From the NCBI GenBank assembly GCA_002269645.1, contig NIVC01003806.1:12090-76089 (forward strand): a stretch of DNA of 64,000 bases, read 5' to 3'. Shown piece after piece: positions 46,853 to 57,645 of this stretch. How positions within the stretch are numbered: position 1 is the stretch's first letter; each line of letters starts with the position of its first letter. Under the pieces are notes generated by a model. That model was given only the letters and a program-made list of their open reading frames with translations. It did not search any database and was not told the origin of the DNA. The stretch comes from Macrostomum lignano (taxonomy: Eukaryota). The position numbers were made by a program, and so were the translations under genes.

Positions 46853-53607
<6,755 letters not shown>

Positions 53608-54861: not shown

Positions 54862-57645
54862 TTAATTTCCACGAAATATCAACTTCTTTGTCAGGAAATT
54901 GTCAAACACCGGAGTCTCCACCAATGGAGATGGAGATCGCACCACCAATTCGCGCAGGTGCTGGGTGAACTCTGGCAGCTCTGGCGGCGGATAGTTAAAA
55001 TGTTTTTGCAACTCCGCCGAGAAGGCCGAACCCTCGCAGTCACCGCCCTGATGGCTGTACAACATCAACGTGTCCCTGTGGACTCGCACGTCTCCATAGG
55101 CTGCCATCCCACCCGGAGACACGCCTTGATTCAGCAGCAGTTTTGGCAGTCCCTCGCGAGTTCGGGCAGGCCCAAGCAGCCCCAGCTTCTCGTCGAAGGA
55201 CAGGCGACCGAAGTCAAGCAGCGCAAGAGCCCAGGCACTGCTTTCAGTTTCAACGGCTATTCTTCTTTGCACATAGTCTCTGAACTTTGATGATACATTT
55301 GATCGGAGATCCACAACGTAAAAGCCTTTGCTATCAAGAAAGTTTCGCAAATTCTGCTGAACTTTCTCCTTGGCCTCAATTCGATAGTGACACTGACCAT
55401 CGACATCCACCAAATTAAAGGCAGCCAGGAACGCTTGCCTATTGTCATCAATTTTGTAGACATCGGCGTCGTCTGGCGTGACAAGGTTTCTCACGTTTTG
55501 AAACTCATTGGCGTCTCCGCCGCCTCCGCCTCCACCACCGCTGCCTCCGCCACCGCCTCCGCCGCCGCCTCCACCGCCGCCTCCGCCTCCTCCTCCTCCG
55601 CTACCTCCACCGCCGCCGCTTCCGCCTCCGCCTCTACCTACGGCTCCTTCACGACTATCACTAACAGTATCGACCACCGACACCCTAGCCTGACATGTAT
55701 CCTGCACGGCCACCACCCCAAACACCCCGTCTCCATGGTTACTCGGCGGTCGCCGTTTGTCAGCCTTGGCGCAAAACTGCTCTTTCGGCCGACCATTCCA
55801 CCCGAGGTCCTGTCCTCCTGACTGCCCACTGTCGACTGATGCGTGCGCTTTCTGCTACTTCTCCTGTTCGAGCCGCTGTGGTTGCTGGCATATTTTCCGC
55901 TCCCGCTTGAAGGCCCTCCAGCTCCGTCCCTGTCATTGGATTCGGCCGCCACAGAGCTTGACTGGCCGGCAGTGAGCTCAGTAATCCTGTAGGTTAGTTC
56001 GATCCGGATGCTGAGTCATTAAAATTGCCGCACATTGAAATATACCTTAATGTAAATTCTAAGAAACCAAAACGGTACTTACGTCTTCCGTATGAATTTA
56101 GTCGCTTGTGGCCTCTCGTTGGCTTGGGCCCACTCTTCCGCAGTGAGTCCGTGCTCTCCCTTCGCCTCCCAGTCGGCCGGGTCCTTGATGTAGCGAGCCA
56201 GCGTCTCCAGACAGGCCACCTGATTTCGTCTGGCGGCCAGAATGATGGCGGTGTTGCCGCGGTTGTCCGTCAGCCTGTAGTTGGCCTTCTTCTTCAGGAG
56301 CAACTCAGCGATGGCTGCGTGACCTCTCTGGGCGGCGTACATGAGGGCAGTGAAGCCGGACCTGTCCTGCAATGCAAAACAAAGTGGAAGCGTTATGATT
56401 ATTAGGGAACTGTTTTTATTAGTTTCATTCGAATTTTTTATCTCACCTGGCAGTTGAACAGCACCATCTCGTTGCTGAGCAAGGTTTTCGCGATGGCCTC
56501 GCAGCCAGCCACGCTGGCAAGAATAAGCGCAGTTCGCTTGCTGTAGTCCACAAAATTGACCGCCTCTTTGCTGCGAGAGTTCAGCTGATAGATAGTTAGG
56601 AATTCCTGCGGGTTGCCTTTGGCAGCCGCTCGCAGCATCGCGTTCTGGCCGCTGATGTCCACGTCGCTGGCTAGGACATCCCCTGTAGTTGAGGATCTGT
56701 GCAGACTTTTAGTCTCTGGTAGGCCGGTTTTTCGATACTTTTCATCTGCGAAAAAATTCGAAAAATACGAATCGATTACAGATTTAAGTCGATCTGGAGA
56801 CACAAACTACCTGAACTCTGTTGCTTCACCTTTATTAAAAAAGTAATAGTAGACTATTAGTATACCTCTTGCTGTATTATAGTTGAAAAAATTGCTAGAA
56901 ATTTAAATCTGTTGTTACGTAGCAGAGTTAAGATTTACTGAACTGCTACAATTAACTTTCATAGAGTTCATTTTATTTAATAATTTTCCCCTTTCATTTG
57001 CTAATGTTTAACCGTTTCGGGCTTGAGGAGCGTGAAAAAACTTTAGTTCCTAGTGCTGAAGGTCTTTCCACGGTAAATCCGTGGAAGAACCGGCCGGAAT
57101 AGACTAGTTATTGCGTTGGCAATACCAGGAATTTGCCACGGAATTGCCGTGGAATTGCCGAGTTAGTTTTATTATTTTACTGTACAAGCATTACTGTACA
57201 ACAACTACTAGTTAGTCTAGTAGTCCTTGGTACACATAGAGAAAAATTCAAGCCCTTGCTTGTACAGTCAAATAATAAAACTAACTCGGCAATTCCACGG
57301 CAATTCCGTGGGAAATTCCTGGAATTGCCAGCGCAATAACTTAATCTATTCCAACCGGTTCTTCCACGGATTTACCGTGGAAAAACCTTCAGCACTAGGA
57401 ACAAAAGTTTTTTTTCACGCTCCTCAAGCCCAAAGCGGTTGGGCATTGGAAAAAAGGGGAATATTTCATTATACTTCAGTTTGGGATTTGTGAGATGGGA
57501 AACAACATAAGGTGCAGCGAGTTTTGCGCCACTGCACGAACGAGCCTACCAGAATGAATGAAAAACATTTTCAAATCTTACCTGTCGAATGGCTGTGGTT
57601 GACACTTTTATGGAAACCATTGAGGCCACTGGTTGATTCGTTCAT
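54862..57645 (-). CDS. Ankyrin-repeat + caspase-like (catalytically dead) protein, about 576 aa; exons 57645-57582, 56745-56447, 56366-56083, 55986-55743, 55701-54862
   Basis: 4-5 ANK repeats (KRTALILASVAG, GFTALMYAAQRGH, GNTAIILAARRN), then a Ser/Gly-rich linker and polyG. The C-terminal ~200 aa align by eye to the caspase p20/p10 fold: YKID, NLRNFL..KGFYV, SS..ALLDFG, GLPKLLLNQG, RDTLMLYS, EGSAF, LTKKLIF. Splice phases are consistent (1731 nt). The last intron (41 nt) is inferred. Confidence 0.75.
57010..57440. mobile_element. Foldback MITE-like element with ~180-bp inverted arms
   Basis: 57010-57190 is the near-perfect reverse complement of 57257-57440, with a 66-bp spacer. The arms contain internal palindromes such as TTCCACGGTAAATCCGTGGAA. 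Confidence 0.85.

Follow-up and report, generated by a model that had tools for sequence, protein, structure and literature searches.

We analysed a stretch of 64,000 nucleotides from the flatworm Macrostomum lignano (hereafter the window; position 1 is its first letter), which corresponds to positions 12090-76089 of contig C3806 (NIVC01003806.1). Its minus strand carries a gene of four exons that encode, from the N- to the C-terminus, ankyrin (ANK) repeats, a linker, a poly-Gly tract and a caspase-like domain. The results below make it very likely that this last domain, linked to ANK repeats, is derived from a caspase and is catalytically dead.

Exon 1 (57582-57645, 64 nt) opens with the ATG at 57645-57643 and ends at the donor CAG/GTAAGA; apart from an in-frame 3-nt indel, it is conserved in a paralogous copy of the gene on contig C2392. 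The ANK repeats begin in exon 2 (56447-56745), which closes at a phase-0 donor (CAG/GTGAGA), and continue through exon 3 (56083-56366), which ends with the residues FIRK and a phase-2 donor (AC/GTAAGT). The introns other than the first are short, 72 and 80 nt. In a Pfam search the N-terminal part matched ANK families only, all above cut-off (Ank_2 6e-19, Ank_4 6e-16, Ank 6e-14), and a DED prodomain was not found.

Exon 4 is read in two frames. Its first part (55641-56010, frame A) begins with IRIELTYR, encodes a Ser/Gly-rich linker and runs into a TAG at 55640-55638. Within it, a run of G residues at 55725-55728, four in the window and five in C2392, parts frame A from frame B. Frame B then encodes a (GGN)n tract of about 40 Gly with Ser (55516-55637), followed by the caspase-like domain of 217 aa (54865-55515; aligned core residues 13-215, at 55479-54871), and ends at the TAA at 54862-54864. 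This frame is open from 55854 to 54862, that is, for 330 codons, and has no Met ahead of the domain, so the upstream exons are required for its expression.

Relationship of the C-terminal domain to caspases

The origin of the domain is best seen in comparison with caspases of the same genome. As the reference we used nine M. lignano caspase domains from genes with ANK exons, each matching the Pfam family PF00656 (Peptidase_C14) at E 1e-24 to 1e-35. In hhalign, a four-sequence profile of the pseudocaspase domain aligned with these nine over 197 collinear columns (Prob 90%, P 1.6e-6, score 47.5), and a seven-sequence profile did so over 198 columns, residues 13-215 pairing with 13-241 (Prob 95.7%, P 9.1e-9, score 61.9). 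Sixty column shuffles of the four-sequence profile scored 13.4 on average (standard deviation 2.4, maximum 23) and the reversed profile scored 13.6, compared with 47.5 for the real one. An earlier note on this DNA, made from the letters alone, had aligned the C-terminal ~200 aa in blocks with caspase-3; both the profile comparison and a MAFFT alignment show this part to be collinear with caspase domains.

The MAFFT alignment of 13 sequences, made independently, has the same motif pairs as hhalign: LLDFG with MSHG, LLLNQGV with IFIVQAC, HRDTLMLYS with GQDCLYIYS, and TPVFDNFLTKKLIF with QIPCYKSTLLKLLFF. The catalytic His-Cys dyad of caspases (SHG ... QACxG) is not present in the window domain. 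The position of the His is taken by Phe102 (55210-55212), where DFG of the window pairs with SHG, and that of the Cys by Val132 (55120-55122), where NQGV pairs with QACR; the earlier note had assigned both replacements to the right codons. The residues it listed as kept are also seen in the alignment: Arg45 of YRIE (55381-55383) stands opposite the conserved S1-pocket Arg of caspases, and 13/13 sequences have the Gln of QACRG. So is the deletion it reported in the small subunit, where the loop of 5-6 residues bearing the second S1 Arg is absent. A hairpin of about 11 residues after His-Gly is deleted too, while the hydrophobic core and the C-terminal strand motifs are retained. Given that the dyad is absent and that both the hairpin and the loop have been deleted, the domain cannot be a cysteine protease.

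The exon structure of the gene can be compared directly with that of a true ANK-caspase at locus L042 (contig C557), whose gene model scores for both parts (Ank_2 8e-28, Peptidase_C14 7.8e-25) and has SHG and QACR intact. A phase-2 intron after FIR-x is common to the window gene, to L042 and to a further pseudocaspase gene (L040), and a phase-0 intron between exons 2 and 3, before DRxG, is common to the window and L042; the last exon opens with x-I-R in both. The equal positions and phases of the introns indicate that the last exon of the window gene is the positional counterpart of the linker and caspase exon in the active paralogs. Exon 3 is 35-42% identical, with the same boundaries, to its equivalents in true ANK-caspases and in the pseudocaspase subgroups called group B below. 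True ANK-caspases also carry G/S-rich linkers at the place of the Gly tract in the window, and the motif EFT, one of those conserved in pseudocaspases, is typical of them as well (VEFTHLLPKV).

An AlphaFold2 model built on the 13-sequence alignment (mean predicted local distance difference test score, pLDDT, 66.9; predicted template modelling (TM) score 0.71) showed a caspase-like order of strands and helices. When the model was compared with the PDB by Foldseek, the top 50 matches were all caspases (caspase-6, -3, -9, -1, -4 and -11; E 4e-8, TM 0.6-0.69).

Several results weigh against this interpretation. The evidence comes from the genomic DNA of one genome and from predicted structures. 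The alignment behind the AlphaFold2 model includes real caspases, so the model shows compatibility with the fold and, being partly circular, is not an independent proof; with an alignment of two close paralogs and no caspases, pLDDT fell to 33.5 and the model was unusable. The structural check proposed in the earlier note thus returned the matches to caspase-6, -3 and -9, with this restriction on their meaning. Its proposed Pfam check recovered the ANK families, as described above, and left Peptidase_C14 below the cut-off (E 0.12, 12.5 bits; cut-off 21.4), although the sub-threshold match is collinear, residues 154-212 pairing with profile positions 173-232. The domains of C2392 and of group B1 had no Peptidase_C14 match in Pfam. 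With the 217-aa domain, phmmer found no match among PDB sequences and, in an exhaustive search of 1.84 billion representative proteins, 0 matches; an hmmsearch of the PDB with the seven-sequence profile gave nothing relevant. Comparison by hhalign with the non-ANK caspases of the same genome was not significant (P 0.024-0.11). To these points should be added the reading frames of the window copy and the substitution rate of its domain, which are given in the next section.

Other searches were likewise empty: a word-indexed search of 5.8 billion sequences with the 217-aa domain, and phmmer with the domain against the 30 best-scoring caspase loci of M. lignano, both yielded nothing, and a profile of two close paralogs only, compared with non-ANK caspases in hhalign, gave P 0.066. 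Flatworm relatives of the true ANK-caspase were not found in the large protein collection, which apparently holds little or no flatworm data. The fact that significance was reached with ANK-caspases only, and not with non-ANK caspases, identifies the former as the bridging relatives. The case shows that paralogs from the same genome can reveal the affinity of a domain that Pfam, the PDB and sequence searches on the scale of billions all fail to recognise.

Intact and frameshifted copies of the gene

The genome contains two close copies of the window gene, one on contig C56 that is 99.7% identical and one on C2392 that is ~91% identical. As seen from a base-by-base alignment, C2392 reads GACGGGGGTG where the window and C56 read GACGGGGTG (window 55725-55728). 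Owing to its additional G, C2392 has exon 4 as a single open frame, and its four exons encode a protein of 601 aa, which consists of a short N-terminus, 4-5 ANK repeats, a Ser/Gly linker with poly-Gly, and a caspase-fold domain of ~200 aa; the linker is disordered. This continuous reading indicates that ANK repeats and C-terminal domain are parts of a single gene. The fusion of ANK repeats to a dead caspase domain, as proposed in the earlier note, is therefore found in one reading frame in C2392 and in the open frames of group B. In the window copy as assembled, the ANK repeats with the linker and the caspase-like part are in different frames. Judged from its sequence, that copy would give a 339-aa protein of ANK repeats plus linker, provided that the loss of the base did not arise in the assembly. 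The window copy may be a frameshifted allele, and its importance is limited for that reason.

It is quite conceivable, if not the reading we favour, that the window copy and its twin on C56 were recently disabled. The missing G would then be real, translation would stop at 55640-55638 after the 339-aa product, and the downstream caspase-like frame would be a relic, no longer translated but so far free of stop codons. The presence of the identical four-G run in the separately assembled contigs C3806 and C56 favours a real frameshift, as does the making of the assembly (Mlig_3_7), in which Canu contigs from PacBio reads were polished by Pilon with Illumina and RNA-seq reads (PMC5730564). Pairwise ratios of non-synonymous to synonymous substitution (dN/dS, by the Nei-Gojobori method) between the window and C2392 also speak for it: exons 1-3 (0.28, binomial p 4e-4) and the linker (0.31) are constrained, whereas the pseudocaspase domain, at 0.80 (11 synonymous and 30 non-synonymous changes, p 0.33), is near-neutral and cannot be distinguished from 1. 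This relaxed constraint fits either fast evolution of the domain or loss of its translation after a real frameshift.

On the other hand, all 330 codons of frame B are still open. When the 31 alignment columns that differ between the window and C2392 (~28 substitutions and an indel) were polarised with group B as the outgroup, the window copy was not richer in derived states (5 versus 3 substitutions), and by this comparison either copy may be the drifting one. Furthermore, the G run is a homopolymer in a PacBio/Canu assembly, lies beside a GC-rich repeat and belongs to near-identical polyploid copies, all of which favours an assembly error.

Partial duplicates with only the ANK exons 2-3 were seen at L005:1105-1402 (C2392:29104-29401), C4850:8652-8948 and C3934:7586-8158; a caspase-like exon was not found downstream of them. 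The first of these precedes the intact C2392 gene by 3.4 kb. In exon 3 it shares 98% identity with the window, more than the C2392 gene's own exon 3 does, which may be due to gene conversion or mis-assembly.

The pseudocaspase family and its possible role

At least eight ANK-pseudocaspase copies are present in the genome and form three subgroups (A, which includes the window gene, B1 and B2), all with long open frames. The domains of group B1 (C4989:16180-16845 and C282:176253-176921) are 24-28% identical to the window domain, and those of group B2 (C356:189975-190619, C282:181143-181793 and C4989:9591-10235) are 47-48% identical to B1. In both, the domain ends an open frame of 691-1055 aa. 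An ANK exon, again with the phase-2 intron, precedes this frame, and the linker contains Gly/Asp tracts of more than 150 residues at the place where the window has ~40 Gly. The B1 and B2 genes occur as tandem pairs at L037 (C282:175000-184999) and at L038/L039 (C4989).

Both catalytic residues are gone in 7/7 pseudocaspase sequences, which have Asp-Phe for the Ser-His of caspases and Gln-Gly-x for Gln-Ala-Cys. In group B the residue at the position of the Cys is Ser or Tyr, and Gln-Gly is invariant. The family has the conserved motifs DF, QG, EFT and PxFDNxLxKxL. Groups A and B1 retain the S1 Arg, which B2 has lost. Within B1, dN/dS of the domain is 0.80 (C4989 vs C282), a value based on few changes, 3 synonymous and 9 non-synonymous; within B2 it is 0.26 (C356 vs C282, p 2e-4). 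The purifying selection in B2 demonstrates that a dead caspase domain is being kept in one of the subgroups.

The family belongs to a large set of caspases. PF00656 has more than 166 matches in the genome, many of them in tandem clusters, and at ~16 loci an ANK exon is followed on the same strand, after a few hundred bases, by a full PF00656 domain. These candidate true ANK-caspases were found on contigs C2582, C557, C2235, C1302, C713, C70, C166, C6 and C301. Two dead caspase domains were also noticed in ANK-caspase clusters, at L046:3072-3797 (plus strand, GCG...AQT) and L045:6479-7228 (minus strand, GHG...QAE), and still match the caspase hidden Markov model at E ~1e-42 to 1e-45. They share with the window family the genome, the setting in ANK-caspase clusters and the replacement of catalytic residues, but the window family is far more diverged and has conserved motifs of its own; the two look like younger, independent pseudocaspases.

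One of the ANK-caspases, on C2582 (L041, G000:C2582:128000-137999, minus strand 6885-3625), has a continuous open reading frame of 683 aa made up of a 500-aa region with a match to Mab-21_C and the first ANK repeats; behind it come ANK exon 3 and a caspase exon that is intact. The Mab-21_C match (E 7e-5, 23.3 bits) is just below the cut-off of 24.1. The copy on C557 (L042, 6961-3696) has one stop between the Mab-21-like and ANK parts. The sequence at L041 suggests that an architecture of Mab-21/cGAS-like region, ANK repeats and caspase is possible.

The earlier note did not recognise the combination of ANK repeats with a caspase fold. Caspases with ANK prodomains have, in fact, been described in flatworms (Genome Biol Evol 2024, PMC11463336), having first been noted in Schistosoma (Lee et al. 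2014, as cited in PMC11463336); the architecture as such is therefore not new, as the ~16 loci of this genome also show, among them L042 with its ANK and Peptidase_C14 scores. According to the same paper, ANK caspases occur in parasitic flatworms only, the sole M. lignano entry being a caspase with a kinase-like prodomain; flatworms, it reports, have lost FADD, and the parasitic ones have lost DED caspases and gained ANK caspases (PMC11463336). The ~16 ANK-caspase loci of the free-living M. lignano are at odds with the published absence from free-living flatworms (PMC11463336). These many loci are not described in the literature we searched, and no paper joining pseudocaspase and ankyrin was found there; the dead, poly-Gly-linked variant appears to be undescribed. 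A free-living, regenerating model flatworm, in which transgenesis works (PMC5730564), thus has many ANK-caspase loci together with a subfamily of dead proteases that is under selection in at least one subgroup.

Platyhelminth ANK caspases resemble the intact pseudocaspases in having ANK repeats N-terminal to a C14 caspase-type domain in one protein, and the nearest detectable relatives of the window domain are the ANK-caspases of its own genome. The window domain differs from them in lacking the His, the Cys and two loops, in scoring below the Pfam cut-off and in the poly-Gly tract of its linker. A second parallel is provided by c-FLIP (CFLAR) and the vertebrate caspase-8-like pseudoenzymes, which combine a caspase fold without the catalytic Cys with an interaction prodomain and presumably pair with active paralogs. 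In the window family the prodomain consists of ANK repeats instead of tandem DED, the origin is independent and the domain is far more eroded; pairing may be supposed by analogy. CSP-2 and CSP-3 of C. elegans are non-catalytic caspase homologs, arisen as lineage-specific duplicates, that restrain an active caspase, and are like the window family in both lack of catalysis and mode of origin. CSP-3 is essentially a mimic of the small subunit and has no prodomain, while the window family keeps both subunit-equivalent halves in one chain behind ANK repeats.

We consider it probable that the pseudocaspases are a lineage-specific family that arose from the ANK-prodomain caspases of M. lignano and acts non-catalytically; the most likely mode would be that of a decoy for active ANK-caspases or of their partner. 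The protein would work by binding. Its retained caspase core might serve for pairing with active ANK-caspase paralogs; alternatively, it might compete for whatever binds the ANK prodomain of these paralogs, and either route would tune the activation of ANK-caspases in the way that cFLIP or CSP-3 do. That the family is a regulator of active caspases, in line with the inhibitor or scaffold of the earlier note, is the most economical idea, and we propose it only tentatively, by analogy with those proteins; if it is, it would represent an independent invention of c-FLIP-like control.

A less probable role is that of a binding or sensing module, in which the dead domain would be kept, for example, as the platform of an immune-like pathway specific to this lineage, much as paracaspase or caspase-like domains are put to non-catalytic uses. 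Such a role would agree with the place of the family in a huge, tandemly duplicated caspase expansion, with the N-terminal regions weakly matching Mab-21_C in related active members, and with the fact that groups A and B1 still have the S1 Arg and Gln. However, the S1 Arg is missing from B2, the sole subgroup in which constraint could be demonstrated, and the proposal is purely inferential.

The role as decoy or partner can be extended to a wider, rather speculative picture, in which M. lignano would run a large, lineage-specific signalling system of ANK-prodomain caspases, some active members having an N-terminal Mab-21/cGAS-like region in addition, and the poly-Gly ANK-pseudocaspases would be its dedicated decoys or adaptors, maintained by selection. 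If this were true, an animal in which FADD-type extrinsic apoptosis has been lost would have evolved, independently, a counterpart of the DED/c-FLIP logic.

Less likely readings and neighbouring sequence

The earlier note had joined the two frames of exon 4 by a 65-nt intron (e.g. 55665-55601), which would restore the frame in the window copy and give a 576-aa protein. We find this very improbable. GT...AG pairs of suitable length are present, and the other introns of the gene are similarly short; but a brute-force scan found hundreds of GT/AG pairs that would serve equally well, so that a fitting pair has no evidential value. The intron it proposed is GC-rich and coding-like, and nearly the same sequence is translated as plain coding sequence in the intact C2392 frame, the real difference between the copies being the one missing G.

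Hardly any weight can be given to the view that the C-terminal domain is not derived from a caspase, its motif matches being due to chance or its QG stretch being a decayed ANK repeat: direct Pfam and PDB searches were indeed without a caspase match, and the four-sequence profile matched designed ANK-repeat proteins in the PDB at positions 120-164 (4gmr_A, E 0.0046), yet those matches were gone with the seven-sequence profile, comparison by hhalign with ANK exons or with an ANK consensus protein gave P 0.03-0.8, as opposed to 9e-9 over the full length for ANK-caspase domains, the shuffled controls were far below the real score, and the conserved exon structure puts the domain exactly at the place of the caspase exon. 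The designed-ANK lead was rejected on the first two of these grounds.

Intron 1 contains a long inverted repeat of foldback or MITE-like (miniature inverted-repeat transposable element) type at 56997-57453, with nested arms of 85, 72 and 44 nt that are 84-95% complementary. About 240 nt of the intron at this repeat are absent from the C2392 paralog. Convergent with the pseudocaspase gene, and unrelated to it, is a gene for a Notch-like receptor on the plus strand (~47961-52000), with six EGF matches, an LNR domain and ANK repeats at 51479-51985.

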